A program made the translations under genes and the position numbers. The notes below the pieces were generated by a model. The model searched no databases. It saw only the letters and a list, made by a program, of their open reading frames with translations, and was not told the origin of the DNA. Shown here piece by piece: positions 7,143-64,000 of a stretch of 64,000 nucleotides of DNA. Each line of letters begins with the position of its first letter. Positions within the stretch are counted from its first letter, which is position 1. The stretch lies in contig OZ251252.1 of assembly GCA_965240325.2 (NCBI GenBank), forward strand, positions 1-64,000, read 5' to 3'. Source of the DNA: Rebecca billardiae RCC1528. Taxonomy: Eukaryota > Protista > Haptophyta.

Positions 7143-8482
7143 TGCGCATCAGCGAGGCCCACACCCACGAGGGAATGTGCAGCACGCGGGGCGGGGCGGG
7201 TAGCCCGTTGCTCCGCGCGAGCGCGGGTACGCGCTGTATGTGCCGCATGTCGACCGCGATGGCGTAATCGAGCGCCTCGCCGCCGACGAAGTCGCCAGAG
7301 TAGATCATGTGCATGTCCTCCTGCCGCCAGCCGAGAGCGGTCGTCGCGAGGATGCTTGTCGATGTCGGCTCCAGGCATGATGGGCTCGGCGCAGGTCGCG
7401 TTGACGTCGTACACGGCCACCGCGCTGAGCACGAGCGCGTTGACGTTCACGCGGTCGTCGCTCTTCGCATCTTCGACAGGTCTGGCGCTCGCGTGCTCGG
7501 CGGCACGAGGAGCTGTTGGTTGTGCGCGCGCGCGCGCACAGCGACAGCGTGTGCCACTCGCGATCGAGAGTGAGCAAGCGCTGCTCACGCGGGCACACGA
7601 ATCGCAGCGCATCCGTCACCGGCGTGACGACTTCCGCCTCGTCCCGCAGCGCCTGCGCCATGGACGAGGATGGCGCGTCGATGTTGCATGCTCGACGATT
7701 CATCTCTCTGCGGATGGCATCACGGGCTTGTCTGTGTCGCGCTGCGGCGAGGGTCGCCAACTCGCGATGACGCGGTTGCTGCCACAGCGACAGACCCGGG
7801 AGGTGCGTCCGCAGCGCGTCGTACGCCGTTGGCGCTGCGCTTCCGTCGCATTGGTCACCGTCGACGCCATGCAGGCCGGACGTGGGCTTCGGCTGAGGGA
7901 CCGGACCGCGAGCAATGACTGAGTCCGGTGCGCGGATTCCGGCGATCGAGTTCAGAAGGCCGCGCCAAATCTTGCGTCGCGTGCGATGGCGCTTCCCGCC
8001 CGCGAGACGCCTCGTGATGAGGGCTTTCTCACACCGAGCCCGACGCGCGACGGTGGATCGCGCGAGGCGGCCATCGTGCGCAGCGCATGATGCTATGGCC
8101 GGTGCGAGCTTTCGACGTGCACGTCGGGCGAGGATCGCCCCAGGTCGCACGATTGTGTCGACGCGCCGAGCGTACCGCTCCAAACGCGTCGATTTAGCCC
8201 CCGTTCGACCTGCACGCGAGACGACGAGGGCAGCAATCGCGAATCGGGCGAAAACCCGTCTAGGGAATCCCCGCGCGATGTCCGCGCCGGCGTTGGATTT
8301 GGCGCGCGCCGCCCATGTGCTCCGCGCCATCCAGGACTCTCTTTCGGCCGAGCGTCCCCAGTGGGAGCTGCGAGGGCGCCCGGTAGTGAGCGAAGCGATT
8401 TTCTTTTCTCTGCGAGGCGATTTTATTTTTCCTTTTCCTTTTCCTATCTTTTTCCCGGGCACTACAAGGGGCGGACCTACGG
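7143..8482 (-). mobile_element. Truncated copy of DNA-transposon family 'U' (terminus GGCGGGCCGTAGGTCCGCCCCTTGTAGTGCCCGGGAAAAAGA) with degenerate ORF
   Basis: Colinear and highly similar to 46404-47720, and to the reverse complement of 44599-45915. Carries a frameshifted ORF remnant. Confidence 0.75.
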
Positions 8483-10943: not shown

Positions 10944-12323
10944 GGGTCGATTTTTTTGGCTTCGGCGCACGGAGCGCCGATCTCGTCAACGAGCGGCCAT
11001 CGTGAAAGCGCGCGAAAGTTGCGTTTGCGGGGGCTCGCGCCTGCCGGGGTCGTGCGACGCGGGCGAAGGGCGCGCGGCCCCTCGCGCTGGTCGGCGGTGA
11101 CGAGGACACCCAGGTGCGCCATCTCGCGCGCCGCCACGCCCCTCTCCGCGTCTGCCTCGCGCACACGCAGCGATTGCATTTGGATGTTGCATTCTTGCGC
11201 ATGCTTGCGCGCCACGTTGCGGGACGAGAAAAAGCGTCATGCGGTTAGGTTTGGCAGTTTGAGATGGTTCAGATGATGTTGTGACAGGAACTGGAAGACC
11301 TAACCGCATGACGCCCTTCCTGCGCGCGCTACACGCATCACGTGCTCTCCGCGCAGGTGAGCTTGAAAATTTGAAGCTGCTGCTCCTCTGCGAGGCCATC
11401 GAGGCGAGCGGCGGCTAGCATGACGCAGCGCTCTCCCCAGCTGCCACGGCCAGCCACCTGCACCCGGCTGTGCTCGCACTCGCCTTGAGTGTGTGCACGG
11501 TTGACACGTCGACGGTGCTCGGCGGTGTGTTTTTGACTGCTGGTTGGTACGCACGCATCATGGGCCCACAGTGGAGTTGGGGTGCGTGCCGTGGCTGTGG
11601 CGCGCACGCGATCGACCCATACTACACACGCACAGCGCAGCTCGGCATCGTTACGGGCTTCAAACGTCGGCCAGAGCTTGTTTGCTATCCGCGTGCTGCG
11701 GTCGTCGGCTCCGAGCAATCCACGAGGATGACAACAGGCGGTGCGTGCGCTGTTTGAAGGCGTTGGGCGCGGCGTCTGCTGGCTGTGCAGTCGCGCCTGG
11801 GTACGGCTCGCATGCTACGCAGCGGCGGATACCAGTCTGATGCGGTTTGACGCACGGGCAGTCATCTGCTTTGCTCTGCACGCGTGGCCGGCTGATCATC
11901 CTTTCGCAACGCGTGTCTGCGCGTGCGGTGACTGCTCCCAGATGGGCTCGACGCGAGGCAAACGCGTGCGAGACTCATCGATACGGAGCTCCCCTCCAGG
12001 CAAGCGAGCGTTTGAGCGCGCTCACCTCACTCATGCCTACCCACGCGCATGTTTGCGCGGCCCACTGGTTCGAATGATGCGACGAGGTCGGTGCGGCGTG
12101 CTCGTGGGCAGGAGTGCGCGCTCAGTCGACGGTCAAGACGCGCGCCACGAGGAGCAGTCATGTGCCCAAGGTCGCTCGACCAGCGCGCGACCAACGGCAC
12201 CCGCGTAGGGCAGCGCAGGAGCTCGCGTTTGACACAGTGGAGCGCCACTGGGGCGGACGGGCGCCATGGGCGCCCATCGGCGCTACCAGCCCTCCCGTGC
12301 GCCGAAGCCAAAAAAATCGACCC
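10944..12323. mobile_element. Non-autonomous TIR element (MITE-like, 1380 bp)
   Basis: Perfect 29-bp TIRs GGGTCGATTTTTTTGGCTTCGGCGCACGG (10944-10972 / 12295-12323), with ATAT on both flanks in an AT-rich target. No transposase ORF. Confidence 0.85.
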
Positions 12324-12821
12324 ATATTATATTAATATATATATTAATATATATTATATTTAACGGGACTACGACCGCGCGCGCGTGCAGCGGGCAGCAT
12401 CGTCATCGTCATCATCGATCCGCCGCACCCCGGCACCCGCGAACCGGCGGACGTGACAGTCACCGATCGGATGCGCTGCGCTGGCAGCAGGCGCCACTCC
12501 GCGGTACCGGGAGCGGTCGGCCATGGCCGCGCGGTGCTGTGGTGCGGTGGTGGTGGTGGGCGGCGACTGCAGAGGCTGGCAGGGGAGTGAGAGCACGCGA
12601 TTCCGGAACGCGGCGACGGCCCGCCCGCGGTTGACGCCAGTGGCTTGCCACTTGGCAGCGTGCAAGTCGAAGCTGGCGCGCATCCGCGTAGCGGCGATCG
12701 GCGCCGCCGGCAGCAGTCGAGCCGCCGGGCGGCAGCCAAGCCGGCGCAGCGACGTGCCCGGCCGCGCGCAGACGGACGGCACGCGGCCGCGAGCAAGAAG
12801 ACATGGAGGGCGCTGCACCAC

Positions 12822-24371: not shown

Positions 24372-26297
24372 TCAGAGCGCGGGCGGCGCTGTGTTGACGG
24401 TGAGGAAGACGTACGGGTAGAACTCGGCCTGCTGGCCGGGCATGTCCGCGTCGTCGCCGCCCACCATGTCGCCCGCCGCGAGGTGGCCGTAGCGCTGGTC
24501 CAGCGTCTTGCGCAGCGCCATGTCCTTGCGCGGCTTGGGCTTGAGCAGCACCGCCTCGAACGTGGGCGGCACCCCGTACCGCAGCACCGACTCGACAAAG
24601 AGGCGCACGGCCTTGAGGTGCACCATCGCGGAGTAGGCCTCGGCGAAGTTGGTCTTGCACCAGCGCAGGAACATGGCCTTCGCCTTGTCGTGCTCCGAGA
24701 TCGCCTTGGCCTTGCCCTCCTTGTCCGCCGCCACGCCCTCCTCCGAGTAGGCAAAGTCGCGCACGGTGAAGCGCTTCTCGCGCGCCGCGTTCTTGAAGTC
24801 CTCGACCACCGAGCGGAAGAGCGTGACGGTGACGAGCGCCGAGTCGCCGTCCTCGTGCACGGTGCGCGAGGAGCCGGGGACGACGAAGGAGGGCGAGGCG
24901 CCGAGGCTCGCGTAGTTCGCCGCCCAGTCCTTGAGCGCGAACTTGGGCACGACGACGAGCAGCGTGGTGAGGTGCTCGCTCTCGATGAAGTCCTCCTTCT
25001 TCACGAGCGCGTTCAGCGAGCGCACCATCAGGTTGCCCGTCTCCTTGCGCTCGATCGCCTGCTTGGCGGAGCGCGCGTTGGTGTACTCGGTCGCCTTCGT
25101 CTTCAGCTCGTCGTCCATGCGCGACAGCGCCGCGTTCAGCTGCTCCGTCAGCTCGCGCAGCGGCGACTGCGCGCGGCGGCGGGCGCGGGCGCGGCGGGCG
25201 GGCGGGCGGGCGGCGCGTCAGCGGCGTCAGCGGCGCGCGGCGCATGCGGCGCGCAGCCGGCCACGCGAGCGGGCGAGCGCCAGCGGCCGCGCGGCACGCG
25301 CCCTCGGGCGGCGGCGGCGGCGGCGGCGGCGGGCCCTCGCACGCGCCGTGCGCAGACGACGGCGCGGCCAGCAGCGCGCCGCCCGCCGCATCGGCCGCGC
25401 CGGTCGCTCCGGCCGCGCCGCCCGAGCCCGCGGCGCCGGCCGCGCCCGCAGCGGCGGCGCGAGGCGGTGCGCACCTTGACGGGGTACTTCGCCTCGTCCC
25501 ATGCGAAGCGCGTGAGGTAGTGCTCGATCGAGACAGGCCGGCCTGCGCGGGCAGCACGCCGCGCCGCCGACGCGCGCGTGAGGGCGGCGCCGCGCGCGGG
25601 GGCCGCAGGACGCGCCGCGCGCCGCGCGGCGGTGCGCTTGCGCGCGCGCGCGCACCGGTGTCGCCGACGGGGATGGTGGGCTCCTCGATCGCGCCCTGGT
25701 CCTTCTGCAGCTCGACCAGCTGGCGGTACACCTTGAACGCCGTCGCCTCGCCGAACGCGTCCGCCTTGATCAGGTCGTCCGAGAGCGCCATCAGAGAGTC
25801 GAGCGTGCCCACCTTGAAGTCCTTCGACGGCACGGCGAACTTGGAGTTCTCGGAGAGGTCGTCCTTCAGCGTGGCCATGTTCAGCTCTGCGCGCGCGCGC
25901 GGCGCCACGCCCGCGGCCGGCGGCGGAGGGGCGCGCCCTCAGACCCGGGCCCGCGCGGCTCGCTCCGGACGCGCTGTGCAGCAGCGGCCGCGCAGCCGCG
26001 CCCGCTGGGTGGCGGGCGGCGGGCGGGCGGCGGCGGAGCGCCGGGCGCCGGCGGCAGGCGGGCTGCCGACCCGTCGCGCCAGGCGCCCGCCGCGCCGCGC
26101 CGCGCCCCACCCGCCTCGCGCGCGCCGCCGATGCCTCGGCGCATCGCTGACGAGCCGCGCCGATGCGCCGATGCGGCCGGCGCGTGGCGGCGCATCGGCG
26201 GGCTCGGGCGCGCCGGGCGCGGGCGCGTACGGTTCCAGTCATCACGCGTGCTCGGCGTGGAGATGAGCCAGAAGCACGTGCCCTCCGCGGCCTCCAT
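24372..26297 (-). CDS. ATP6V1C: V-type proton ATPase subunit C
   Basis: Motifs FWLIS, FKVGTLDSLMALSDDL, YLTRFAWDEAKYP, ESEHLTTLLVVVPK, HLKAVRLFVESVLRYGVP and FYPYV. Exons 26297-26231, 25886-25656, 25542-25475 and 25166-24372 splice in frame with GT-AG introns. Confidence 0.97.
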
Positions 26298-37698: not shown

Positions 37699-38528
37699 TC
37701 ACGTGTCCTCGCCGCCCGCCACCGCCGTCAGCGTGTGCGGCGGCTGCTCGTGCTCGGCCGTGCGGCGATGGCGGCCGGCCTGCCCGGGCTCCTCCGCCGC
37801 AACACACGCCGCCATCGGCGCCACCTGGGCCGCAGCGGCGGCGCACTCTGCGAGCAGCGCGCGGATCTGCGCGATGCCCTCCGTGCTCTTGTCCACGCAG
37901 CAGCTCAGGCCCGCCGCCTCAAAGGCCGCGCGCTCGGGCGTGCCCGCGGGGTCGCCTGCGGGCGGCACGGCGCGCGCCGCAGACCACGCAGGTGTGAGCA
38001 GACCGCGCAGGTGTGGGCGCGCGCGCGGCGGGCGTGGTGCTGCGCGCGGCGGCGTGCGCGCACCGGTGAGCCCGACGATCAGCCCGTCGTACCCGGCAGC
38101 GCGCAGCTCGCGCGTCGCCTCCGTGCCGCTCTTGAGCGGCATCTGCGAGAACGGCGGGGGCGGGGCCGCGCGCACGGGGCCGGTGAGCGGCCGCTGAGCG
38201 CGAGGCGGCGGCGGCGCGCACGCGCACACAGCGGCCGTGCTACACACACGCGCGCTCGGCCCTTTGTGCGCACCTGGTTGTCCATCAGCACCAGCGCCCA
38301 GCGGTGCGGGCAGCCCAGCACGCGCTCCACCGCGTCCGCGCCGTTCTCAGCGTGCGCGTACGGCACGCCCGCGGGGCGGAAGAGGCGGCGCACCAGCGCC
38401 CAGCGCAGCAGCCGGTCGTCCTCGGCGTGCAGGACGGCCAGCCCCTCCGGCCACGCGGGCGGCGGCGCGGCGCCGAGCTTGGACGGGCCGGCGGCGCGGC
38501 CGCTGTGCGCGCTGCCGCCGCTGCCGCT

Positions 38529-38578
<50 letters not shown>

Positions 38579-41396
38579 TGCTGCTGCCGCCCTTGGGCTC
38601 GGCGCAGCCGCGCTGCCCGGCGGCGGGGCTGCTGCCGCTGGCGCTGCCGCTGCCGCCACCGCTGCTGCCGCCGCCGGTGCGCAGGCTGCTCGACAGCTCC
38701 GAGCTGCCGCCGCCGCCGCTGACGGCAGCGCCGCCGCTGCCCGCGCTGCCGCGGTGCGCGCGGCGCGCGGCCGAGTCCGTGGGCGAAGGCGCGGCGAGGA
38801 GGCGGTCGCGCGAGGAGGCGGAGCTGGAGGGGCTGGGCGGGGCGGCGGGCTGCTGCCCGCTACCCCACGGCAGCGGCAGCGTGCCGCCCCTGATCGCCGC
38901 CGCCGCCGCCGCCGCCGCCACAGCCGCCTTGGCACCGCCGTCGCCGTGCGAGCGCGCCTCGGCCGGAGCGGCGGCCGCCTCCGTCTCCATCTCGACCCAC
39001 CACGCGAGGCGTGCGCGCGGCTCGGCGCCGGCGTGCGGCCCGTCCGCCGCGTCCTCCACGACGCCGGCGGCGTGCGCGCGCCAGCGCGCCTCCGTCAGCG
39101 CCGAGCGCTTCAGCGCGGGCAGCGGCGGCGAGTCTTGCGCGGCGGCGCCGGCCGCGCACAGGCGCACGCCGCGCCGCCACGCGTCCGCGCCGCGCGCCGC
39201 CGCGCCGGGCTCGGCCGTGCCGGGCGCGCCCGCCGGCTGGCCGGCGGGCTTGGCGGGGCGCGGCGGCGTGCCACCGCCCTGCAGCACCGTGCGCGCCACC
39301 GACAGCTCCGAGCCGTCGCGCGTCGCCGCCGACAGCCGGCGCGGCTCGGCGCGCGCCGCCGCGCCCGCCGCCTGCGGCGGCGCGGCCGGCAGCGACGATC
39401 GGTGCGGCCGCGCGCCGTGGCCCAGCGCGGCCGTGCGCGCGCACGCCGCGCCGCCGCCGAGCCCGCCCGCGCGCGCGGGCAGCGGCGCCGAGCGCGCCAC
39501 GCCGCCCTCCTCGCCCGCCGCGCACCCCGGCTGCGCCGTGCACGGCAGGCTGATCGCGAACACCGCGCCGCGCCCCGCCCCGCCGCTGCTCAGCGTGAGC
39601 TCGGCGCCGCCGTGCAGCGCAATGATGCGCCGCGCCATCGCGAGCCCGATGCCCGCGCCGCCCAGCCCGCGCATCTGGCCCGCGGTGACGCCCGAGGTGA
39701 ACGGCTCCGCCGTGTTCAGCGCGCGCAGCTCGGCCTCGCCCAGCCCGGGCCCGCCGTCGCGCACCGAGATGGTCACGCGCGCGCCCCCCTCGCGCCCCTC
39801 GGAGCTCGCCTCGGCCTCGGCGCCGCCGTCCGCGTCCGCGTCCGCGGCCGGCTGCACGGCCGCGCTCACCGTGACGACCTGCCCGGGCGCGGAGTACTTG
39901 AGCGCGTTGGAGAGGCCGTGGCCGAGGCACTGCTGCAGCCGGAGCAGGTCGCCCTCCACGCGGCAGTGCCGCACGGCCGCGCCCATGTGCTCCACCACCA
40001 GCGCCACGCGCCGCGCGCTCGCCAGCCCGGCGTACGCCTCGACAGCGCCGCGCACGAGCGCGCGCAGCTCGAACGCGGTGCGCGCGAGGGAGTCGGTGCG
40101 CGCCTCGAGGCGCTCGAACTCGAGCAGGTCGGCGAGGATCGCGTCGACCAGCTCGCACGCCCCCTCGATCGTGCCCAGCCGCGCGCCCAGCTCGCGCGAC
40201 GCGGCGCGCGCGCCGCGCTGCCGCTGCCGCCGCCGATCGGGCGAGCGCAGCCGCCGCGCCGCCTCGTCCGCCGCCGCGGCGGGCAGCGCGCCGCCGTCGC
40301 GCTCGGCGCCCGGCGGGCGCGCGCCCGCCGGGCTGCTGCCGTCGGAGGAGTCGGTGCGCGCGGCCGAGCTCTCGCTCACGGCGGCACCGCCGCTGCTGCT
40401 GCCGCCGCCGCCGCCGCTCCCGCTGCCGTCGCCGCTGCTGCCGCCGCCAAAGCCGCCGCCGCCGCCGCTGCTGCTGCTGCTGCCGCCGCCCTCGCCGTCG
40501 AGCTCGCCCTCGAGCGTGAGCGCGCCGCTGTCGCACGCGTCGCGCAGCGAGCCGGCGATGGTGCTCACGGTGAGCACCGGCGTGCGCAGCTCGTGGTTCA
40601 GCATCCGGATCACCCGCGAGCGCGCGAGCACCGCCGCCCGCTCGGCGCAGCTCTCAGCGGCTGCGAGCGCGGAGTCGCGCTCGCGCTCCGCCGCGGCCGC
40701 CGCGCGCGCGTGCGCGGACGCGGCCGCGCGGAGCGCGACGAGGCGCGCGCGGAGGGCGAGGAGAACCGCGTACGCCACGCCGAGAGCCAGCGCGCGGCAC
40801 GCCCGCGCCACCGCCGGCTCGTGCGCGTCCGCGCGCCACGCGGCCGCGACGGCTGCCGCCGCGCTCGGCAGCAGCGCGGCGGCGCGCGCGCTCGGCGGCG
40901 CGCACAGCACGGAGAGCGCCGCGCCCGCGCGCGCGGCGACGGCCAGCGCGCCCGCGAGGGTCGCGCGCGCATCCAACTCCAGCGCGGCGCCGCCGCGCGC
41001 CGTCTCCACGCGCAGCGCCAGCGCGCTCAGCGCGGGTGCGGGCAGGCCGAGCGCGAGGCCGAGCAGCGCGCCGCGCGCGCGCTCGCCAAGCGCCGGACGG
41101 CTGAGGTGGAGGCCGACGAACGCGGCGGCGCCGGACGCGGCGAGCATGAGCGAGAAGTGTGCGTCGACGAGCGCCTCGCCCAGCGCCAGCGCGCCGAGCG
41201 CGCCCAGCGTGCACGCCAGCGCGAGCAGCAGCTCGGCCGTGGCCTCGGCGCGCTGCTGCTGCTGCTGCGCGCCGCCGTCCGAGCGCCGCCGTGCGCGCGC
41301 GGGACGGCCAAACTCGTCGGCCCCGGGATGGGGCTCTTCCAGAGCGCGCTCGTCGGCGCGCGCAACGTCTATATCCGCATGATCGTGTCGGCCCAT
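37699..41396 (-). CDS. Hybrid sensor histidine kinase (TM-HisKA-HATPase-REC)
   Basis: H-box MLNHELRTP, N-box GDLLRLQQCL..GLSNALKYS, G1 VRDGGPGL, G2 GAGIGLAMARRII.LHGG, receiver LHAEDD...LVLMDNQMP..SG.EATRELR. Introns at 38273-38143 and 38063-37956. Confidence 0.92.
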
Positions 41397-41791
41397 GTCG
41401 CTCGCTCGCTCGGCCGAAGGTCGAGCGGGGAGGCCGGGCGGTTGTTTGCAGGTTGGGAGAACTCAGAACTCCTCTTCGGTGGTTGGGCTTGCTGCACACG
41501 TTCGTCGAGCTTCGATCTTGTTCGCCCGTCCCAATATTGTTGAGCGGTGTTTAGCGCTTTTAGCGGAACAGTTGATATTGACTCATATTCGAGAGACAAC
41601 CATTGCCGATTGTCGATCAGCCTGAATATGGGCAAGATCAACCACCGGTTATCGGGTTGGACCACTTGATTGCTTTCCACCCAGTTTCTAAGATCTCGGC
41701 AGATCTCCTTCACCACGGGCTACGGCGTGGGTGCTACCTACTGGAAAGGGCCGGGAAGCAAGTAATCGAAGGCGAACTCATATGGGTCGTA

Positions 41792-43249
41792 TAACCGATT
41801 TCGGGCAACCGTGCTCATCAAAGTGATTCTCAAGCTGAAGTGAGACTTCAACTTCATCCCCTCTTCGGAAGTGTGTTCGGAAGCCAGCTCCTAGTTCAGA
41901 ACACCTTCGGTCCTATGAAGTCGAACGTCCTTTGCGAACGGGTCTCGCTTCGGTACCGCTTCGCAAACTTGACGACTCGGAGTGGCAAAGTCGTTCCGAA
42001 GCGAAGCCAAAGTACAGGTTCAAGGTCGAGTTGGTCAGCGGGCGGCGGCGGCGGCGAGGGCTTCTCCGGCGGCGGGGCGCGCACGGGGCACGGCGCGGCG
42101 GGAGCGGATGTGCTCGCACAGCCGGCGCGTGTGGACGGGCTGTTGTGGAAGTGCACGTGGCGCCCTCCTGCGCCGCGCGTCTTGCGCCACGCCTCTCTCG
42201 CCGCGGCTCAGGGCAGCGCGCATGCGCGCGCCGCCTCAAGGCCAGCCTAGTGCCGCGCCGCAGCCGACCGCGCGCGCGCCGTGCGCGGCGTGGCCGGGAA
42301 GGAACGGGCGCGGCTGCCGGGCGAGATGGCGACCCCACGTGTGCTCGCCATGCCGCCCCGCCACGCCTTGACGACCGTGTCGTCGGTCCGTTTGCATGCC
42401 TCTTCGGCTGGTCACAAATGGCGTGCACGGCCTCGCGGTCGTGACCCTTATCGGGACGATCATTGAGACGCAGAACGGTGCCAGACGGGCACAAGTGCTG
42501 TGCGTGCATGCGTGTCTATCACCATACGGCCATGTAGAAGGTGCGCCATGCGACGCTTTTCTCGCGCTGATGATCGTTCATCATCATCTTCTTCGAGCTC
42601 AGGTCTGGCTTGTTACGACTAGTGGTCAGCCAACTCGTCAACAGCTGTGTGGATCCGTTATTGTGCCCTTTCGCGGCGTCGCGGGGCGGCATGGCGTGCG
42701 CGTATGGCGTCGCCATCTCGCCCGGCAGCCGCGCCCGTTCCTTCCCGGCCACGCCGCGCACGGCGCGCGCGCGGTCGGCTGCGGCGCGGCACTAGGCTGG
42801 CCTTGAGGCGGCGCGCGCATGCGCGCTGCCCTGAGCCGCGGCGAGAGAGGCGTGGCGCAAGACGCGCGGCGCAGGAGAGCGCCACGTGCACTTCCACAAC
42901 AGCCCGTCCGCACGCGCCGGCTCTGCGAGCACATCCGCTCCCGCCGCGCCGTGCCCCGTGCGCGCCCCGCCGCCGGAGAAGCCCTCGCCGCCGCCACCGC
43001 CGCCGCCGCCGCACAAGCGAACCCGATTGGGCAAAGTGCTCCCAACGTGTGAAGCCAGCTTCTCAGAAGAGGGGTCACCGCTGCTTTGACACGTGTTCCG
43101 CTTCGACTTCCAAAGTGGAACGCAAACCGCAAGCTCACTTCGCTTTAGGATTCGACAGAAGCTTTGGAAGTCGAAGTCGGTTCGACTTGACTTTCCAATC
43201 TGAAGTCACACAATCAGACTTTATGAGCACGGTTGCCCGAAATCGGTGA
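41792..43249. mobile_element. Foldback TIR element 'T' (1458 bp, apparent TA TSD)
   Basis: Outer TIR T(A/C)ACCGATTTCGGGCAACCGTGCTCAT. Subterminal zones rich in CTTC/GAAG. Inner inverted arms ~42041-42367 / ~42675-43011, nearly identical to each other. TA at 41790-41791 and 43250-43251. Confidence 0.85.
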
Positions 43250-43489
43250 TAAAGTGGCGTGATACAATCATCAGTTTAAGGACATGATTGGAGCTCAGTT
43301 TAAGGACATAACTGGAGCTTTGCTTTCATCATCGACAATTGACGATATCAACCCTGCCGAAATAACGTCGTTTGCCCGGGTACGGAAAATTAGGATGCAT
43401 CATCATCATCACTGTTTCGGGCGCAGTTTGTGACAATGGTCCTTTGGTCGAATCGATATCGATTCCCGGCACGATTCCCTCGGCACAAG

Positions 43490-44498
43490 CGAATCGCCGA
43501 ATTTGCTATTCGCCGAATTCGCCGAATCGCCGTTGGAACGGCGAACGCTGCAAGCGAACGCGCATTCGGCGAATGTGGCGAAATGCCCCGATCCGGGCGG
43601 TATTGCCCTTGACCCGCGCGCCGCCGCGTGCGCGTCCGCCGCGCCGAGGCGTGCGGCGTACGACGCGAACTCGCCAAGCGGGCTGTCGAATATGACGCGG
43701 TCGGCGCTTGCGTGCCTCCGCAGCGGCGGCGGCAGCCAGTCGTCGAGCGCGGAGAGCGGGCGCGCCTGCAACTCGGCGCCGCTACGTTGCCACTAGTAGG
43801 TGGCCGCGAGCAGCTCGGCCTTGCACGCGTCGTTGACGCACAGGGTCACGCAGCGCATCTCCGCTACAAGTGTAGCAACGTGCGCTCTGACGAGGCGTCA
43901 GATGAGCGGCGCGACGACTTCTGGCGCGGGCAGCGTTGCGTGCATACGCCTAAGGTGGACTGCCGAGCAGCCGTGAACTCTCAGGCCGACGGACAGCCTG
44001 TGCGCCGGCCTTGGTGGTGGCATCGGCGAGGCTGGCGTTCACCGGGCGGCGCGGCAGACTCGAGCACAATGCTCCTTGGCACGCTTGCAGTGAGACTTGC
44101 CGCCAGCTTAGCGAAGGCTGAGGAAGCTGGCCGGGCCGAGGTCCGTGTCAAGTAAGCTCGTGCCCGACGCAAGGCGCGCATGCGGCGCGCAATGAAGATG
44201 TCTGACCCGCCGCGCGCGTCCCAGAGCTCGGCCACGTACAGGCTTCACAGCTTGGGCACGGTCCCTGGTAGTCGACGGGGTGTGCCACGCGTCATCCTGA
44301 CACTCGTAGCCTGTCAGCTCGGGTGACACATGGCGCGGAAATGTTCGCTACAGTTTACTATGATTTAACGTGCACACTTGGTTAAGGCGTGATACGCAGA
44401 AATATTCGCCATCATATTCGGCGAATTTATTCGGCGAATTCGGCGAATTCGGCGAAGCGGCGAAGGCTGAGGCCATTCGGCGAATCTGCCCATCCCTG
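43490..44498 (-). mobile_element. hAT-like element remnant with TTCGCCGAA subterminal repeats and a pseudogene cargo
   Basis: The right end reads CAGGGATGGGCAGAT on the minus strand. TTCGCCGAA/TTCGGCGAA clusters at 43495-43575 and 44405-44485. Internal minus-strand ORF with in-frame stops (HATLPAPEVVAPLI*RLVRAHV...LAATY*WQ). Left TIR not found. Confidence 0.55.
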
Positions 44499-44598
44499 GA
44501 CTGCTGCTGCCGCAATTCGAGGCCAACTAATGTTCGGAAATAGTGCTGGCGTCAGCGGCTCAGCGCCGCGAAATCGGTCAGCAGGCGATTTTCGATAT

Positions 44599-45915
44599 GG
44601 CGGGCCGTAGGTCCGCCCCTTGTAGTGCCCGGGAAAAAGATAAGAAAAAGAAAAAGGAAAAAGAAAATCGCCTAGCAAAGAAAAGAAAATCGCCTCCCTC
44701 ACTGCCGGGTCGCTTCGCTCACTACCGGGCGCCCTCGCAGCTCCCACTGGGGACGCTCGGCCGAAAACCATCTCCCCGATGGCGCGGAGCGCTTGGGCGG
44801 CGCGCGCCAAATCCAACGCCGGCGCGGACATCGCGCGAGGATTCCCTAGACGGGTTTTCGCCCGATTCGCGATTGCTGCCCTCCTCGTCTCGCGTGCAGG
44901 TCGAACGGGGGCCAAAGTCGACGCGTTTGGAGGCACGGTCGGCGCGTCGACACGATCGTGCGACCTGGGGCGGTCCTCGCCCGACTTGCACGTCGAGCGC
45001 TCGCACGAGCCATAGTATTAAGCGCTGCGCACGACAACCACCTCGCGCGATCCACCGTCGCGCGTCGGGCTCGGTGCGGAAAGGCCCTCATCACGAGGCG
45101 TCTCGCGGGCGGGAAGCGCCATCGCACGCGACGCAAGCTTTGGCGCGGCCTTCTGAACTCGATCGCCGGAAACGGCGCACCGGACTGTCGCGTGCCACAA
45201 CTTCTCAAAGCCGGGCGCATGCAAATCCGTTTGCTACAGCTGTACCAGTTCCCGGCCAAGCCGAAGGGCCGGCCCTTGTCCCGGCGATCATCTTTCGCGA
45301 TCGCGGCCAAAGATCGCTCGGCGCTCGCGGTCCCTCACAGCCGAAAGCCCACGTCCGGCCTTCAGCATGGCGTCGACGGTGACCAATGCGACGGAGGCGC
45401 AGCGCAAAGCGGCGTACGAGGGGCAGCGAACGCAGCTGCCGTGTCTGTCGCCGTGGCAGGAACCGCGTCTTGGCGAGTCGGCGGCCCTCGTCGCACAGCG
45501 CTACAGTATGACCGATCCCAGAGGCGCATCCGCCACGAGCTGAAACGCCGAGCGTGCAACATTGTCGCCCCATCCTCCACCATGGCACGAGCGCTGCGGG
45601 ACGAGGCCGACGTCGTGAAGCCAGTGGCACATGCGCTGCGCTTCCTGTGCCTGCTCGAGCAGCGCGTGCCCACCCTCGATCGCGAGTGGCACACGCTCTC
45701 GCACTGCGCGCGCGCGCACCGCCGACTCAGCTCCTGATACCGCCGAACGTGCGGGTGCCGGACCTGTCGCGCGAAGCGGCGAGCGCCGACGAGCGCTTGG
45801 ACCTGGACGCGTTGTTGCGCAGCGTGGCGGCCGTGCACGACGCCGACGCGACCTTCGCCGAGCCCATCGTGCCCGGAGCGGACATCGGCATCCTCGCGAC
45901 ACACGATCTCAGCCG
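44599..45915 (+). mobile_element. Family 'U' copy (left arm of a 3.1-kb inverted pair)
   Basis: Starts ATAT|GGCGGGCCGTAGGTCCGCCCCTTGTAGTG; homologous to the reverse complement of 46404-47720 and 7143-8482. Confidence 0.75.
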
Positions 45916-46029
45916 TGGCGGCAGCGGAGGAGATGCTGTCGCGTTATTATTCGTCAGTGAGTCAGGTAGCTCACCATCATCTGTGTGTCGCATTGTTATT
46001 CGTCATCCTGCCCGTCAAACCGCTAAATA

Positions 46030-46197
46030 AAAGGCGCGAACCCGCTGGGGAAATATTGCGACAGCACTGGCACGGCCCGCCGACCCCCCCGCCCGCCAGG
46101 GCAGAGTTTTTATTTATTAATAATTACGCGGCTTGGACCACGGCGGCTTCGCCGCTGGGGCGTGTTCACTGTCGGTATTAAACTGTGCCCTGGCGGG

Positions 46198-46233
<36 letters not shown>

Positions 46234-46286
46234 CGGCGGGCCGTGCCAGTGCTGTCGCAATGTTTCCTTTTCGGGTTCGCGTCTTT
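46030..46286. mobile_element. Small foldback/MITE (~257 bp)
   Basis: Inverted arms ~46030-46113 / ~46177-46286 sharing ATTGCGACAGCACTGGCACGGCCCGCCGACCCCCCC..GCCCGCCAGGGCA, around a ~60-bp loop. Confidence 0.8.
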
Positions 46287-46403
46287 CCACAGCATTCGTT
46301 ATTTCGCTCGTGGCCGGGTGACGGACCGAGGGCGGACCCGAGTGACAGGCTACGGGTGACTCAGTTCTCCCACGCGGTGCGGTAACCCGCGGTACGCGTT
46401 CGC

Positions 46404-47720
46404 GCGCATCAGCGAGGCCCACACCCACGAGGGAATGTGCAGCACGCGGGGCGGGGCGGGTAGCCCGTTGCTCCGCGCGAGCACGGGTACGCGCTGTATG
46501 TGCCGCATCTCGACCGCGTGGCGCAATCGAGCGCCTCGCCGCCGTCGCGAAGACGCTTGCCAATGTCCGCTCCGGGCATGATGGGCTCGGCGCAGGTCGC
46601 GTTGACATCGTACACGGCCGCCAGGCTGAGTACGAGCGCGTTGACGTTCACGCGGTCGTCGCTCTTCGCCTCTTCGACAGGTCTGGCGCCCGCGTGTTTG
46701 GCGGCACGAGGAGCTGTTGGTTGTGCGCGCACGCGCGCACAGCGACAGCGTGTGCCACTCGCGATCGAGAGTGGGCACGAGCTGCTCACGCAGGCACACG
46801 ATTCACAGCGCATCCGTCACCGGCGTGACGACGTCCGCCTCGTCCCGCAGCACCTGCGCCATGTACGAGGATGGGGCGTCGACGTTGCATGCTCGACGAT
46901 TCATCTCTCTGCGGATGGCATCACGGGCTTGTCTGTGTCGCGCTGCGGCGAGGGTCGCCAACTCGCGAAGAGTTGGTTGCTGCCACGGCGACAGACCCGG
47001 GAGGTGCGTCCGCTGCGCGTCGTACGCCGTTGGCGCTGCGCTTCCGTCGCATTGGTCACCGTCGACGCCATGCACGCCGGACGCGGGCTTCACTCGGGCT
47101 GACCGGCTGAGGGACCGCGAGCGACAGTCCGGTGCGCGGATTCCGCCAATCCATCGAGCCAGAAGGCCGCGCCAAATCTTGCGTCGCGTGCGATGGCGCT
47201 TCCCGCCCGCGAGACACCTCGTGATGAGGGCCTTTCCGCACCGAGCCCGACGCGCGGCGGTGGATCGCGCGAGGTGGTTGTCGTGCGCAGCGCTTGATAC
47301 TATGGCCCGTGCGAGCGCTCGACGTGCACGTCAGGCGAGGACCGCCCCAGGTCGCACGATCGTGTCGACGCGCCGAGCGCCACGGCCAAACGCGTCGACT
47401 AGTACTCGACTGTGGCCCCCGTTCGACCTGCACGCGAGACGACGAGGGCAGCAATCGCGAATCGGGCGAAACCCCACCTCGGGAGTCCTCTCGTGATGTC
47501 CAAGCCGGCGTTGGATCTGGCGCGCGCCACCCACGCGCTCCGCGCCATGGGCAACCCTTTTTCGGCCGAGGGTCCCCAGTGGGAGCTGCGAGGGCGCCCG
47601 TACCGATAGCCAGCGAGGCGACTTTCTTTTCTTTAATTGCGAGGCGATTTTCTTTTTCTTTTATTTATTTTCTTATTATCTTTTTCCCGGGCACTACAAG
47701 GGGCGGACCTACGGCCCGCC
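46404..47720 (-). mobile_element. Family 'U' copy (right arm of the inverted pair)
   Basis: Ends ...CACTACAAGGGGCGGACCTACGGCCCGCC at 47720; close relative of 7143-8482. Confidence 0.75.
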
Positions 47721-47967
47721 ATTATTGCCCGCCGCGATTGCATCGGAAGCCTGTGCATCATATATGATGTACCGGGAAGCGGCCGACTCGGCCGGTCCGA
47801 CGGCAGCCAGCAGGTCCGACCCGCGACACTGGCGGGCTGCGGCGCCCTGGCCGGCGGCGCCCCGGCGGCCGACCCGCCGTTCCGACTCGTGCGCCGGCAC
47901 GGCACCTCGCGCTCGTCCGCCATCACGCCGAGCGCCGCCGCGCGCGCCGGCGCTGACTGGGCGTGGG

Positions 47968-50746
47968 TCACTGCCCGCCGATCACGTACACCATCGTGCC
48001 CTCGGCGGGCGCGCGGCCGGTGCGCTCGGCGGTGGCGGGCTTGCTGCCGCCGGCCGTGCCGCCGCGCGTGGCGGTGGCCGTGCCGCTCGTGCCCGCCACC
48101 GGCGAGCCGCCGGTCGCGGCGCCGCGCGCGCTGCCCGCCGCGGAGCCGCCCGAGCCGGGCGGCGGTGGCAGCGCGGCCTGCGTGCCGTACGGCGACTGGC
48201 CGGGCTGGCGGCGGCGCGCCCACTCCTGGATCTGCCGAGGGCGCGTCCCGCGGCGCGCGGGGCGGGGGCGCGGCGGGCGTGAGCGACGACCGCGCCGCGC
48301 GTGCTGCCGCCGCTGCTGCCGCGTGCCGCTGCGCACACCTGCATGCGCTCCTTGTTCTTGTTCACCTTGCGGCGCGAGAAGGGCGTGAAGGCGGACTTCT
48401 GCTCCGCACGGCGCTCCATCTCCTCCTGAGAGCGCGGCGCGCGCGCACCACGGGCGGAGGGCGGGGGCGGCGCGGGCGGAGGGCGGGGGCGTGAGTGAGC
48501 GCCCACAGCGCGCGCGCCCTCCACAGCGCGCGCTGCCCTCGGCCAAACAGCCGCAGCGGCAGCGGCGCGGTGCGCGGTGCGCGCGCGGTGCGCGCGCGCA
48601 CCTCGTCGTCGTCCGCGCCGAGCTGCACGGCGTTGTTGGCCGCCATCACGAGCCGGTCGTAGATCTCGTCGATGGACTCGTACGCCTTGGGCGGCTTGGG
48701 TTGCACCCACTCGTAGAGCGCCTCCTGCGTGCGCACCTTGGTGGAGAGGTAGCGCTGCCGCCAGTGCGCGTGCAGCTGCGCCGTCACGTCCTCGTGCAGC
48801 TGCAGGTGCTCCTCGAGGTTGGCGACCGAGCACGCGCCGTCCGCGGGCAGCGCGCGCGTCGAGCGCGGCGCGAGCAGCTCGGTGATCGCCGCCACCTTGT
48901 CGCAGAGGTCGGCGAGCTGCGCCTCGATGCGGTACGCCGCCTCCGCCTCGGCCTGCGCGAGGCCGTCAAAGTCCATCACCGGCGCCGCGTCGCTCTCGAG
49001 CGCCACCTGCAGCTGGCGCTCGAGCGTGCGCGCCGTCTCCTGCGTGCCCTTGAGCTCCGCCTCCAGCCCCTGCAGCTCCACCTGCTGCGCGTGCAGGTAG
49101 CGCAGCAGCGAGGTGTTCTGCTGGTCCTTGGAGAGGTACCGAGATGTGATCTCCTCGATCGTCTGGTCGTCGCCCGGGGCAAACCGCTTGTCCATGCCGG
49201 TGAACTCCTGCAGCCGCGCGAACTCCGAGTCCCAGCCCACGACCTGCGACTGCAGGAAGCCCGCCTTGGTCTCCGCCTGCAGCTGCGCCAGCCTGCGCTG
49301 CTTGCCCAGCGCGTACTGCCGTCGCCTGCGCGCCTGCTCCGACTCGTCGATCGAGGCGAGCTTGTGGTCGTACTCCGAGTCGAGCGTGTCCGCCTTGGCC
49401 ATCAGCTCGGCGAGCTGGGACAGGCGGTGCGCCTTCTCCAGCCCCGAGTCGCGCTGCGTCTGCTGCAGCTTCACCTTCACCTTCTCGCGCTGGTCGAGCG
49501 CCGAGTGCGCCGCCTGCGCCAAAAACGCCATGTCCTCGTCCATCTTGCCGTCCTTCTCTGACATCTTGCGCACCTGCGACAGCACGAGCGCGCGCTCGGA
49601 GCGGAGGTCGTTGATCACGTGGATGAGCTCGGCGTTGGACGCCTCGAGCGCGTTCGCCTTCTCCACCAGCACCTGCAGCCGCGTCGCCAGCGCCTTCTCC
49701 TTGCGCGCCTGCCGCACCAGCTCCTCGGCCGCGCGCGCCTCGCCGCCGCGCGACTCCTTGAGCGTGAGCGCCACCTCCTGCTGCATGTGCCGCAGGTCGG
49801 CGTCCAGGTCCTGCCCGAGCAGCTGCTCCATCTGGAAGGCGCGCGTGTAGTAGTGGATCTTGTTCTGCCGCTGCATCGCGCGCTTCCGGATGCTCGCCTG
49901 CGTCGCGCTCACCGGCTTGGGCGGCGGCTTCTTCTGTTCGCGCGGCATCGGCACGCTCTTGCCGAGCGGGTTGCCCGCGTCGGGGGAGAGCGCCGAGAGG
50001 GCGAGGTCGTTGGCCGACATGGACTGCGCGGAGGAAGGGAGGGCGGGGGCGGGCGGGGGCGCGGGGGCGGCGGGGCGTCAGCGGGCGGCGCGCCGGGGCG
50101 GCGAGGCGCGCGCCGACAGACCCACACACAGACACACACACGCGCGTGCACGCACACGCACACGCACACGCGCACGTACCAGCTTCTCGGTGAGCGGCTT
50201 GGCGGCGCGGTCCTGCTCGCGCGTGCTCATGCGCTTGAGCACGCGCTCGAGGATGCGGCGCTGCCACACGGGCGTCTTCTGGTACCCCTGCGGCGCCAGC
50301 TTCTTCATCACGTGGTTCCAGTGCTCCTCCGTGCCCTCGTCCACCGCCACGCGCGCCTTGGAGGCCGTCTCGTTCACCACCGCGGCAAAGCGGCCGGCGG
50401 CGGAGGCCTTGCCGGCGCGGCCGGCGCGGCCGCCGGGGGGCGGGGAGGCGGCAGTGCCGCCCGCCGGCCCGCGCCCCGCGCCGTCCGCGCCGCTGCCCAG
50501 CTCGTCCGTCGTCGCCGTGCCGAGGCCGAGCGACGTCTCGCGCAGACCGGCGGCGCCGCCGGCCGCGACCGCGTTCGCGCCGCTGCCGGCGGGGGGCGCG
50601 GGCGGCTCGGAGGGCGCGAGCGCGTCGTTGGTGGCCTGCGTGGACGTCAGCTTGAACACGCCCTCGCCCGGCGCGGGGCTCGCCGGGTCGGCCGCGCCGC
50701 CGCCGTCGGGCGGCGCGAGCTGCTCGTCGTCGGCCGCGCTCGCCAT
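47968..50746 (-). CDS. Outer dynein arm docking-complex coiled-coil protein (ODAD1/CCDC114/ODA1-like)
   Basis: LATRLQVLVEKANALEASNAELIHVINDLRSER and FARLQEFTG...ITSRYLSKDQQNTSLLRYL parallel conserved CCDC114/63 blocks. Exons 50746-50180, 50023-48602, 48425-48339 and 48231-47968. Confidence 0.7.
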
Positions 50747-51108
50747 CGGCGCGAGCGGTGGCGGGCGGGTGGTGGGGGCGGCGAGCGCGAGGCTCGGCGG
50801 GAGCGCTCGGCCGCCGGGGAGAGGCCGGGCCGGGTGCTCGTGCGCGCGCGCGCGTGTGCCGGCTCGGGCGGCACGCGCGAGGCTGGGCGCGTCGAGGCGG
50901 TGCCGCAGGCAGCACTGCTGTGCGCGCAGACGCCCTGCTGAAACAGCCGGCGGCGCTTCTGCACCGTACCGTATCTGCTTTCAACCGAGTACGGGCGGGT
51001 GGGTAATCAAGTCCGGGCGGCGCGCGCCCGGAGCGGTCAGCCTCCAGCTTTTGCGCGATCAACGTGGCGCGCTTTGCGGACGCGAGGAAGGCGGAGGGCA
51101 GCGTCGCC

Positions 51109-52438
51109 ATGGCGCAGCGCGAGCAGTCGTTCATGCTGCTCCGGCACGAGGGCGTGCAGCGCCACCGGGTGCGCGCGTCCCCCCTCCCGCGCCCTCCCGC
51201 CCTCGCGCCCGCCCTCCGAGCGCCGCCGCTCTTGCCGCGCGCGCACCTCTTGCCGCGCGCGCGCGCGCGCGACGGGCGCGCGCGAGGCCGCCGCCCGCCG
51301 CCGCTCATGCGCTCGCGCGCGTGCCGCGCGGCGCCGGCGCCCGCAGCTCGGCGCGCTCGTCGCGAGGCTCGAGTCCAAGGGCCTCAAGCTCGTCGGCATG
51401 CGGCTCCTCGCCGCCACGCCGCCCGCCGCGCAAAAGTCGGCCGCGGCCAAGGCGGCGGGCTCGGGCGCGCTCGTCGCCATCGCCGTCGAGGGCCTCGGCG
51501 CGGTGCGCGCGTGCGCCGCGCTGGTGGGCGCGGACGGGTACGGCGCGCTCGACCCGGCACGCCCGCTCGCGTACGCATCCGCCGACGCCGCCGCCGCCGC
51601 CGCCGACGCCGCCGCCTGGCTGGGCGGGTGCGCGGTGGGCTACGCGCACCACTCGGATGCGCAGACGCACGAGCACGCGGCGGAGGCGGCGGCGGGCGCG
51701 GCGGCGGCGGGCGGTGGCGGCGCGGGGCACGGCGGGAAGAAGGGGGGCAAGCCCGCTGCGCCCGCGCCGCAGCCGCAGCCCGCCAAGCCCGCGCCGCCGC
51801 CCACGGCCGGCGCCAAGGGCGGCGGCAAGGGCAAGGGCGGCGGCGGCTCGGCCGCGCCGCCCGCGGCCGGCGGCGGCGCGGCCGGAGCGGCCGGCGGTCC
51901 GGGCGAGAGCATCCACGCGTATCTCGAGCGGCACGCGGTGCCCGCCCAGCTGAACACGGCGCTGAACCAGCTGCTCGAGGAGATGCCCGACCGGCCGTAC
52001 GACTGGCTCGCACGCCACTTCCTCGCGCAGGGTGCGCTGCAGCGGCGCGGCGCGGCGCGGGGTAGCGCGCGGCGCGCCGCGCGATCGGCCGCCGCCGCTC
52101 CGCTCAGCCGCCCCCGCCGCCGCGCCGACCGCCGCCCACCGCGCGCCCCGCCCACCGCGCTTAGGGCAGCCATAGCGCAGACGCCGGCGGGGGCGGGGGC
52201 CGAGCGGCCGCCCAAGCCGAGTGGCGCCGCCAAGCCCGCCCGCCGCGCGGCGCCGCCCGCGGCGGGCGGCCGCGCGGCGGCGGCGGCGCCGCCCGAGCCG
52301 GCCGCGGCCGCGGCCGCGGCCGCGCCGCGCGCCGTGCTACGCGGCGCGTGCGCGTGGGAGCCGGCGCACTGCACGCCGTGGGTGCCGCCGCCGGCGAAGC
52401 CTCCGTCGTGGCCGCCGCAGGCCGCGCTGTGGTCCTGA
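51109..52438 (+). CDS. Degenerate nucleoside-diphosphate-kinase domain plus Dpy-30/RIIa-like docking domain (NME5/RSP23-like architecture)
   Basis: EQSFMLLRHEGVQRHRLGALVARLESKGLKLVGMR and ALVAIAVEGLGAV align with NDK. AYLERHAVPAQLNTALNQLLEEMPDRPYDWLA is a D/D-type domain. Two GT-AG introns. Confidence 0.7.
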
Positions 52439-52720
52439 GTCCACGCACCCGCTCGCGAGCCGGGCCGGAGCCCTTATTCATAGTCCGAGTCGCGCCAGGA
52501 CGGTCCCAAGCGGAAGGGGGCCGCCCGTGACGTCCCATCGCCGGACTCGGCAGTCGTCGGCTCGGCAACGGCGCGCACTATTCATCAGATTCAGCCGGAT
52601 ATCATCATCGGTTCATCTCGCACGTGAGATGATAGCAGGCCCACAATTTCGTCGCGCTAGCGAATCGTTTCTCGCCGGACTGTGGCGCGGCGGTGGTGCA
52701 GGCGTGCAGTGCAGCTTCGC

Positions 52721-53834
52721 CAAGGGGAGTCAGGGTACAGCACGTCCAGTTGGGCTGCAGCTGGAGCTTGGGTACAAAAGCTTCCCGCGGCGCAGCGGCA
52801 CTCGCCGCCGCCGCCGCCGTGGAGGGGCGGTGTGGCGCGCACGGCGTGAGCCGCTGCGGGCGCTGAGGTGCGCGCGACGGCGGCGCGCCCGGCGGCGCTG
52901 CTGTAGGAGGCCACTGCCCTCCTCTCTGCCCCGCGCGCTTCGCTCGTCGTCGCCGTCTCCGCGCCTGCGACTCAGCGCGCACGCGAGCGCGGCACCGCCC
53001 GGCAGCCGGGGCAATCTCTGCCGTGACTGCGCATGTGCGTCGCGACCTGGTCGGCCCAGCGCGCGAGGCGCGTGCGGGCGAGGTAGGGCCAGTATGGGCG
53101 CGCGCCATGCCGCCTCGACCTTGCGCCGGTGGGCATGTCGCGGGCCTTGCACCTCTGTCGACAACGTTGACAAACAATGCGGCACCCAAGCGCAGACGTC
53201 AGTGTGCACGATCGAGGCAGTAGGCGTACAGACGCGATAGTTGCAGAGCTTTTTGTGATCATGCGAGTCATACATTGTCAGTGACTCTCGCCCAGGTCGT
53301 CTGCGCGCTGAACTGACGTTTTGACTGAGTGCCTCGAGATCGCCTCGACGATGGCCCGTGCATTGCTTGAACACAGTCCAAGCGGCCAACCAGACACACG
53401 TGCTCAGTTCCCTGTTGTACGCTCTGATGGGCTTACTTGAGGCGGCATGGCGCGCGCCCATACTGGCCCTACCTCGCCCGCACGCGCCTCGCGCGCTGGG
53501 CCGACCAGGTCGCGACGCACATGCGCAGTCATGGCAGAGATTGCCCCGGCTGCCGGGCGGTGCCGCGCTCGCGTGCGCGCTGAGTCGCAGGCGCGGAGAC
53601 GGAGACGACGAGCGAAGCGCGCGGGGCAGAGAGGAGGGCAGTGGCCTCCTACAGCAGCGCCGCCGGGCGCGCCGCCGTCGCGCGCACCTCAGCGCCCGCA
53701 GCGGCTCACGCCGTGCGCGCCACAACCGCCCCTCGACGGCGGCGGCGGCGGCGAGTGCCGCTGCGCCGCGGGAGCTTTTGTACCCAAGCTCCAGCTGCAG
53801 CCCAACTGGACGTGCTGTACCCTGACTCCCCTTG
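52721..53834. mobile_element. Foldback element 'P' (1114 bp) with 396-bp TIRs and 7-bp TSD; P-superfamily-like ends
   Basis: Arms 52721-53116 / 53439-53834 are nearly identical, with termini CAAGGGGAGTCAGGGTAC. Perfect TSD GCTTCGC at 52714-52720 and 53835-53841. Confidence 0.92.
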
Positions 53835-54017
53835 GCTTCGCAGTCGGGCCTGCTGGCTCGGCCGAGGTGCGCACACCCGCCGCCTCGCCCGGCTGCTCTG
53901 GAAGCTCAGGAGCCACAGCCGAGGCAAGGGGCGGCGCGAGGACAAGGGCAACCGCCCTCCACTCGCGCGCTCGCAACCATTCGCCTGCTGCCGCTCCAGG
54001 CGACGCCGGCGGGCGCG

Positions 54018-62356: not shown

Positions 62357-63514
62357 CCGCGCCCGGACGCGTGCCACAGGCATCGCCGCCTGTCACGGCG
62401 CGGCGGCCTCGTTGGTCGAGCGAGTGGAGCGACCCGCGTCCCTCGCGTCGGCGTGGGCAGAGCCGGCGGCATGATGAGATGGGCAGGCTGCAGAGTGCAG
62501 TCGGGTCCCCTCACGGTAATACTCCTGCTTCGGCACACATCTTTAATGAACTACTATGGTGTCAGCCCAATGACTCAAATGAGGCCTACTCCTCATCCCA
62601 CCGGTATCATATATATATGGGCGTGCAGGGGTAAGGTGGTTCCCTAAAATCCCCTAGCTGTATGTGAGCCTGCCCCTGCACAGGTACAATTTTGACGGGC
62701 ACATCCAATAAGGTCTGGCGCTCTGCAGTGGCGGATGCCAGCTGAAACTGGGGCTTTTGGCCCAGTTTGCGATGGCACAGTGGGGGGCTTCGCGGGTCAG
62801 TAAACTGGGGAAAAGCCTCAGTTTCAGATGGCACGCGCCCACTGCGGCCGTGCCATCGCAAACTGGGCCGAATCGCCCAGTTTGCGTGTGCACGGGGACG
62901 CACTGCGGCCGGCTGCAACTTGGCTCAGCATGGGGCAGCTGTCCACAGCCCAGGCGGGGCGTCACCGCCTGCGGGCCGCCGGTGGGCAGGGCCGACGGCG
63001 TCGCAGAGCTCATGCGTGGGAGCGGCGCGTTGAGAAGGCAACCAAGGTCGAGAAGGAGGGGGCAAGGCCGGCAAGCAGCAGGGGCCACCGGTACGTTCGT
63101 ACATGCCTCCACACCGGTGCACATCACCCTTGCTCGCGGCCGTGACCTGTGCTGGCACTCACCTCATCATCGCCCACCATGCAGTGGCGGCCGAGCTAAG
63201 GCGAATACTCACAGGCACCGAACACGCATCGGCGGTGCCCACTGGTGCTGGCATGCTGTCCTCTACTTGCTGTCGGACAGCAAGCGGAGACGGCACCGCC
63301 GCAGCTGCGAGCGGGTGAGGTGCTGCTCTGCTCAGCGAGGCTGAGAGGCTGAGCACGGATCACGGATGGTGAGCCCTGGTCTCTCAACGCATCCAGGAGA
63401 GCAGTTGGTGCATAACTGTGCTCAGGCGTGCAGGACCAACCATCCGGTGCTGCTTCAAGCACCCGCGCCAACAGCGGCGGTACTCAACTCCACGCTGCTC
63501 ATGCGGCCACACAG

Positions 63515-64000
63515 CTGCAGGGATGGTGCCACGGCGGGCGGCGGCGGTCGACGCAGCTGTCAGCTCGGCGGTGCGCGCCCGAGGGGCCTAGGCGACGAAC
63601 GCGCCGAGCGCGGTGTGGCTGCTCGCTTCGCCCAGCGCGCGCGAGCCGCTGCCATCGGGCGCTGCTGCGCCCGCGCCCAGCCGGGGCAGCAGCAGCTGCG
63701 CTCGACTCCGCGCCGAGTGCGGCGGCAGCAGCGGGGATGGTGCCACGGCGGGCGGCGGCGGTCGCTGGAGCTGGCAGCTCGGTGGTCTGCGCCCGAGGAG
63801 CCTGGGCGCTGGGCGCACCGAGCGCGGTGACGCTGCTCGCCTCGCCCAACGCGCTGGAGCCGCTGCCACCGGGCGCCGCTGCGCCCGCGCCCAGCTTGGG
63901 CAGCAGCAGCTGCGCTCGACTCCGCGCCGAGTGCGGCGGCAGCAGCAGGGATGGTGACACGGCGGGCGGCGGCGGTCGCTGGAGCTGGCAGCTCGGTGGT
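63515..64000. repeat. 214-bp tandem repeat running off the window edge
   Basis: GGATGGTG(C/A)CACGGCGGGCGGCGGCGGTCG at 63521, 63735 and 63949 (period 214). Confidence 0.9.

Follow-up and report, generated by a model that had tools for sequence, protein, structure and literature searches.

How can two transposable elements with unrelated ends carry the same interior? This question is raised by a stretch of 64,000 nucleotides (nt) of contig OZ251252.1 from the haptophyte Rebecca billardiae RCC1528. The stretch, referred to as the window, begins with a (CCCTAA)n telomere, beyond which the guanine-cytosine (GC) content is about 60-90%. It contains two non-coding elements, T (41792-43249) and P (52721-53834), in which a pair of long inverted arms surrounds a spacer. 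This arm-spacer-arm unit of about 0.9 kb is called the core. A preliminary description of the locus had proposed that T and P share the core but not the ends. The coordinates and sequence anchors given there were all confirmed, and a common ancestry of the two interiors despite different ends is supported.

Homology of the element interiors

The left inner arm of T (42041-42367, plus orientation, 80% GC) starts on its outer side with a (GGC)n tract and contains an inward-facing ATG at 42350. It is followed by a spacer of 307 nt (42368-42674, 56% GC) and by the right inner arm in minus orientation, which extends over 42675-43012 including its (GCC)n tract. The inverted repeat formed by 42041-42367 and 42675-43001 comprises 327 nt at 97% identity. 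The arms of P (52719-53116 and 53439-53836) comprise 399 nt at 98.7% identity and surround a spacer of 322 nt (53117-53438, 57% GC). On the left, the part that is homologous to the T arm is located at 52826-53116 (plus orientation), with an inward ATG at 53107. The right arm, in minus orientation, is located at 53439-53834, including the terminal CCTTG.

A similarity that merely reflects GC composition is conceivable, as low-complexity DNA of 90% GC can reach raw alignment scores near 150 and shuffled pairs show 63% identity over aligned columns. This explanation is counted as refuted, its remaining probability being close to nil. The local alignment of T arm and P arm scored 155, above all of 500 composition-matched dinucleotide shuffles (82.7±8.8, maximum 115; z-score 8.2), while the reverse-complement control was not elevated (score 58). 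When 738 segments of the window were each normalized to their own shuffles, the four highest-ranking ones represented the P arms (z 5.8-8.4, next 3.8). The arm match found with nhmmer had E=1.5e-5, and a three-anchor pattern picks out exactly the four arms in the window. Between the elements the arms are about 67% alike (192 of 288 aligned positions identical), compared to 97-99% within each element.

The spacers agree in the expected orientation. Aligned globally with the orientation kept, they reached z-scores of 3.5-3.7 (0-1 of 1000 shuffles), whereas the reverse orientation gave 0.7; the local z-score was 2.3. All eight spacer anchors are present in T and P and keep their order. The colinear homology proposed earlier holds for the arms; that of the spacers is orientation-specific but weak, and weaker than had been implied. 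The distance from the first anchor to the ATG, previously described as about 274 and about 273 nt, was remeasured as 274 nt in T and 273 nt in P; from ATG to ATG, the distances are 343 and 342 nt, respectively.

The homology begins directly inward of a (GCC)n/(GGC)n tract in both elements, at 42068 in T and at 52826 in P. An 18-nt CTC(GCC)5 tract lies at the outer edge of both cores in opposite orientation (42041-42058 in T, 52801-52818 in P) and has one further copy in the window. As a mark of the junction this match was set aside because of its low complexity, and it may reflect either a junction or chance. Tracts of the (GCC)n type are abundant, and the 15-mer matches 83 times across the window.

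Ends and classification of the elements

T is bounded by terminal inverted repeats (TIRs) at 41792-41821 (plus orientation) and 43220-43249 (minus orientation). Including the flanking TA dinucleotides (41790-41791 and 43250-43251), the paired stretches 41790-41821 and 43220-43251 span 32 nt and are 94% complementary. Subterminal shells are located between TIRs and arms, at 41822-42040 (52% GC) and 43013-43219 (51% GC). The left one contains 11 dispersed copies of the motif RAAGYS in both orientations, and the right one carries the motif as well. The shells are about 240 nt long each; together they hold 23 RAAGYS copies compared to 2.0 expected (at most 6 in 1000 shuffles, for a motif picked post hoc). 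The possibility that T is old and once had long TIRs, of which the shells would be decayed symmetric remnants, was rejected, as the left and right shells do not align beyond the TIR (z 1.2) and have no common diagonal.

P is flanked on both sides by GCTTCGC (52714-52720 and 53835-53841, plus orientation), an exact direct repeat and target-site duplication of 7 base pairs (bp). Its left tip (52721-52825, plus orientation) begins with CAAGG and contains two copies of GGGTACA and the (GCC)n tract mentioned above. The tip has no homology to the T ends (z 0.3 and 1.3); a single left-end local score reached z 2.9, yet stayed under the best shuffle. The motif sets differ too, with GGGTACA occurring four times in P and never in T and RAAGYS only twice in the whole of P. 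The earlier view that T and P have no terminal sequence in common is therefore upheld. As T shells and P tips are unrelated, T does not represent a P copy whose ends have worn away; this possibility, named beforehand as a counter-explanation, is ruled out by T's own TIR and its motif-dense ends of about 240 bp. The first 65 nt of the P tip (52721-52785) are strongly CpG-poor (observed/expected 0.19), and all other parts of T and P have values above 1.0.

P has Galileo-like features, namely the 7-bp duplication and the foldback of 399-nt arms around a spacer. Its end reads CAAGG and may represent the CA-N-R-G type of terminus of the P superfamily. The target-site duplication of Galileo is 7-8 bp long (PMC4168063). 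No THAP-domain or other transposase was found in P, in T or in the 47 open reading frames (ORFs) of the window that were scanned.

Tc1/mariner elements are characterized by a TA duplication and TIRs of about 30 bp, CACTA/EnSpm elements by a CACTA/CACTG terminus and a 3-bp duplication (PMC10741241). T has TA on both sides of TIRs of about 30 bp. These flanks are probably a 2-bp target duplication, which would suggest Tc1/mariner; a 2-bp match in a single copy is weak, and a reading with AT and CACCG ends fits equally well. The CACTA/EnSpm features were not found in T, where the ends would be (C/A)ACCG and the 3-bp flanks differ (TAT and ATA). The flanks CGTA and TAAA likewise show no 4-bp duplication of the piggyBac-like TCA...TGA type. 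Non-plant EnSpm-like elements with 2-bp duplications exist. An AT duplication in combination with CACCG ends and motif arrays would presumably point to an EnSpm-like T.

Coding potential, structure and constraint of the core

No coding signal was detected in the core: matches between T and P are distributed evenly across codon positions, and 1-nt indels break the frame. The left ORFs starting at the ATGs both have 38 amino acids but stop at non-homologous positions, the right ORFs have 58 versus 14 amino acids, and arm-encoded MPP(R) is all that the peptides starting at the ATGs have in common. Nothing was found with Pfam, protein searches, Atlas or exact look-ups, and the core was rejected as a coding relic. 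It was also rejected as a structured RNA. Inside both elements Rfam was blank at the gathering threshold and at E<=5, and the folding of single arms does not exceed that of shuffles (z -0.16 and -1.43). The whole element is able to form one long hairpin.

Simulated divergence amounts to about 0.5 substitutions per site in the arms and about 1.0 in the spacers. The anchors are not unusually clustered, as the longest identical runs match uniform divergence (P-values of 0.51 for the arm and 0.08 for the spacer). GC content is 79-80% in the arms, 56-57% in the spacers and 51-52% in the T shells. The contrast between arms and spacers in rate and GC content needs no selection, because arm-to-arm conversion gives the same pattern: in the gene-free human Y palindrome P6, the arms are slower and GC-biased relative to the spacer through conversion (PMC3723533). 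In T, 7 of the 11 differences between the arms fall within the 34 nt that adjoin the spacer (42334-42367 versus 42675-42708), as if the homogenization of the arms faded toward the loop.

The preserved geometry had been taken as a sign of a function in the module itself. This is not borne out by coding, Rfam match, excess folding or anchor clustering, and the near-exact match in length is the only remaining hint of constraint. A function of the core on its own is so far not supported.

Search for further copies

The comparison of the core rests on two copies, T and P. No free copy was found elsewhere in the 64 kilobases (kb) of the window, where the closest relative of the T core is the distant P core. 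Exact-pattern scans of metagenome, viral and prokaryote collections gave no real match, two viral matches in phage portal/terminase DNA being due to chance, and 23 kb of Diacronema lutheri contained nothing convincing. Such searches need exact words or called genes, and their blanks say little about the host genome.

Origin of the shared core

The preferred explanation, with a probability of about 0.5, is that the interior of a CAAGG foldback of the Galileo/P-like kind came to lie in a T-type shell, either through capture or through nesting with loss of ends. P would be a non-autonomous Galileo/P-like foldback that is mobilized in trans by a P-type transposase binding the CAAGG tips. T would be a non-autonomous element of another superfamily, with a TIR of about 30 bp and about 240 bp of putative transposase-binding motifs per end, and inside it would carry the core of an element related to the CAAGG foldbacks. 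The core may have entered through Pack-type capture, with a template switch while a gap was repaired, or through nesting with subsequent loss of the inner tips, and the (GCC)n tracts at both junctions could have acted as microhomology. These two routes are not separable because no inner duplication survives. Once inside, the core would be carried as passive cargo, while arm-to-arm conversion in each lineage would keep the arms 97-99% alike, raise their GC content and slow their divergence compared to the single-copy spacer.

Several observations weigh against this capture. The inner junctions of T have no leftover CAAGG/CCTTG pair. They also have no target duplication bracketing inverted ends, and a nested insertion with a surviving duplication was rejected for this reason. 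No donor copy of the T core was found, and T itself is seen once in the window. In the foldback at 44597-47722, arms and centre show a mild GC contrast only (69-70% versus 65%). Both core lengths match within 1 nt, with a joint chance of 0.002-0.08 across neutral indel settings (calculated post hoc). The core is also centred in T within 0.5 nt (likewise noted post hoc), as random nesting would rarely achieve but minimal ends of equal size would. Length match and centring would, however, also result if minimal ends of equal size had recently captured a core from a family of fixed length.

The same two observations, together with arms that are slower than the spacer and the precedent of superfamilies among the SINEs (short interspersed nuclear elements; PMC4824008), would be accounted for if the core were a functional module under selection. 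It would correspond, among DNA transposons, to the SINE central domain, would benefit any element that carries it and would have changed its transposase partners repeatedly. Roles proposed for it are end pairing via the hairpin, a fixed nucleosome geometry, convergent transcription or a hairpin RNA. Given unclustered anchors, single-arm folds at the level of shuffles, the blank Rfam result, a passive explanation for the contrast in rate and GC content, and only two copies compared, selection on such a module appears rather unlikely. Equally doubtful is a portable fixed-length arm-spacer-arm module that is common to several DNA-transposon superfamilies here and survives by swapping its transposase-binding ends. 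Of the earlier proposal that a module moved between families or swapped ends, the common ancestry with different ends is retained and the module function is not.

An unlikely alternative is that the arm began as promoter plus 5' leader in an autonomous ancestor. The ancestor's left end, reaching slightly beyond the transposase ATG, would have been copied onto its right end; the spacer would then be a decayed gene start, and one lineage would later have replaced its tips. The arms do end 9-17 nt past GCCATG in T and P, homology of the spacer is confined to one orientation, and for Galileo the extension of TIRs by internal sequence, transposase ORF included, is published (PMC3573991, PMC4168063). 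A decayed gene start is hard to reconcile with peptides that share nothing beyond the arm-encoded residues, with left ORFs stopping at non-homologous positions and with right ORFs of unequal length; similarity to a transposase or THAP domain is missing as well, in a comparison whose power is low at this divergence. As an origin of the core, this derivation is compatible with the preferred capture. Quite unlikely is that each shell captured, independently of the other, a third-party palindrome of the same kind, supplied by a repeat of the host or by a third family of foldbacks, or that the transfer ran from T-type to P-type. The large T-P distance in the arms allows separate donors and abundant (GCC)n tracts are present at both junctions, but the window holds no free core copy and the P core is continuous with its TIR.

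Genomic context and other repeats in the window

Host genes on the minus strand include a histidine kinase (HisKA, HATPase_c; 38082-41462) and an ODAD1-like coiled-coil protein (48365-50077). The histidine-kinase reading frame has its first ATG at 41396, and T is located about 400 nt upstream of this codon. The V-ATPase subunit C gene is found at 24372-25878, also on the minus strand. Its exon 24375-25166 has its closest named relative in Diacronema lutheri (68%), and an RNA contig of run ERR14847148 agrees with the exon DNA at every position. Judging by this one gene, the host belongs to the Pavlovophyceae.

T forms a transposon cluster (approximately 41500-47800) with a putative hAT-like element and a 3.1-kb foldback. 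The former, located between T and the foldback (43480-44500), has TTCGCCGAA/TTCGGCGAA repeat clusters at both ends and the right end CCCATCCCTG. The foldback (44597-47722) shows layered arm identity, with 100% at the tips, 90-95% in the outer arm and about 80% in the inner arm. It contains a small inner inverted repeat (46030-46107/46182-46286) beside a poly-G run, has no clear duplication and does not match the T/P core. A one-ended relative of its right arm is located at 7144-8483 (84% over 1378 nt). A further element of 1.4 kb (10925-12342) with TIRs of about 30 bp (GGGTCGATTTTTT...) sits in a (TA)n tract and has, at 11216-11332, an inner inverted repeat of 44 nt. The subtelomeric region at 5131-7105 contains direct repeats of about 620-690 nt with 90-97% identity, and tandem units of about 218 nt with 86% identity occupy 63460-64000 and continue past the window end.

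Comparison with known systems

If the core is passive, the locus clearly exemplifies the passage of an entire foldback core between families of DNA transposons. Homology-based clustering would then merge different superfamilies in such genomes, and the core would offer a small, many-copy system to measure arm-to-arm and GC-biased conversion in a eukaryote of extreme GC content. If, on the other hand, conservation of the core in several end types is established, a change of ends, as in SINEs, could allow non-autonomous DNA transposons to persist longer than their transposase, and a function of the core would become directly testable.

A report of the exact cross-superfamily arm-spacer-arm arrangement was not found in the open-access literature. 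The preliminary statement that no element like this has been described is nevertheless too strong in view of precedents from Galileo (PMC4168063, PMC3573991) and SINEs (PMC4824008). The arms of Galileo incorporate pieces of other transposon families (P, Mar, 1360), in both TIRs (PMC4168063), its TIRs are extended by internal sequence, and interiors are exchanged between its subfamilies (PMC3573991). P resembles the non-autonomous two-TIR copies of Galileo, a member of the P superfamily in Drosophila, in its long near-identical arms, short spacer, 7-bp duplication and lack of a transposase (PMC3573991, PMC4168063). The likeness noted is one of structure; P has a haptophyte host and GC-rich arms without tandem repeats. 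Furthermore, a foldback core is found here inside another shell, not foreign DNA inside foldback arms.

The minimal-end design of T has a parallel in Ds-like elements. T is also similar to Pack-TYPE elements, in which minimal ends with motif arrays surround unrelated cargo (PMC8903248). In contrast to these, the cargo of T is the palindromic core of another transposon and not a host gene fragment, and its donor locus was not found.

In the SINE superfamilies CORE, V, Deu, Ceph and Meta, the central region is kept while the mobilizing end, the tail, changes (PMC4824008). These are retroposons with a core conserved across phyla, whereas T and P are two copies of a DNA transposon in one genome with no conservation shown to exceed neutral expectation, so that SINEs serve as an analogy only. 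The primate Y palindrome P6 shares the arm-spacer-arm layout and the homogenized, GC-biased and slower arms, for which no function is needed (PMC3723533), but its arms are about 100 kb long and non-mobile, and conversion in T and P is likely rather than observed. The shared core of T and P is a real and unusual finding, and it is a variant of two known phenomena, chimeric non-autonomous transposons and the concerted evolution of foldback arms.

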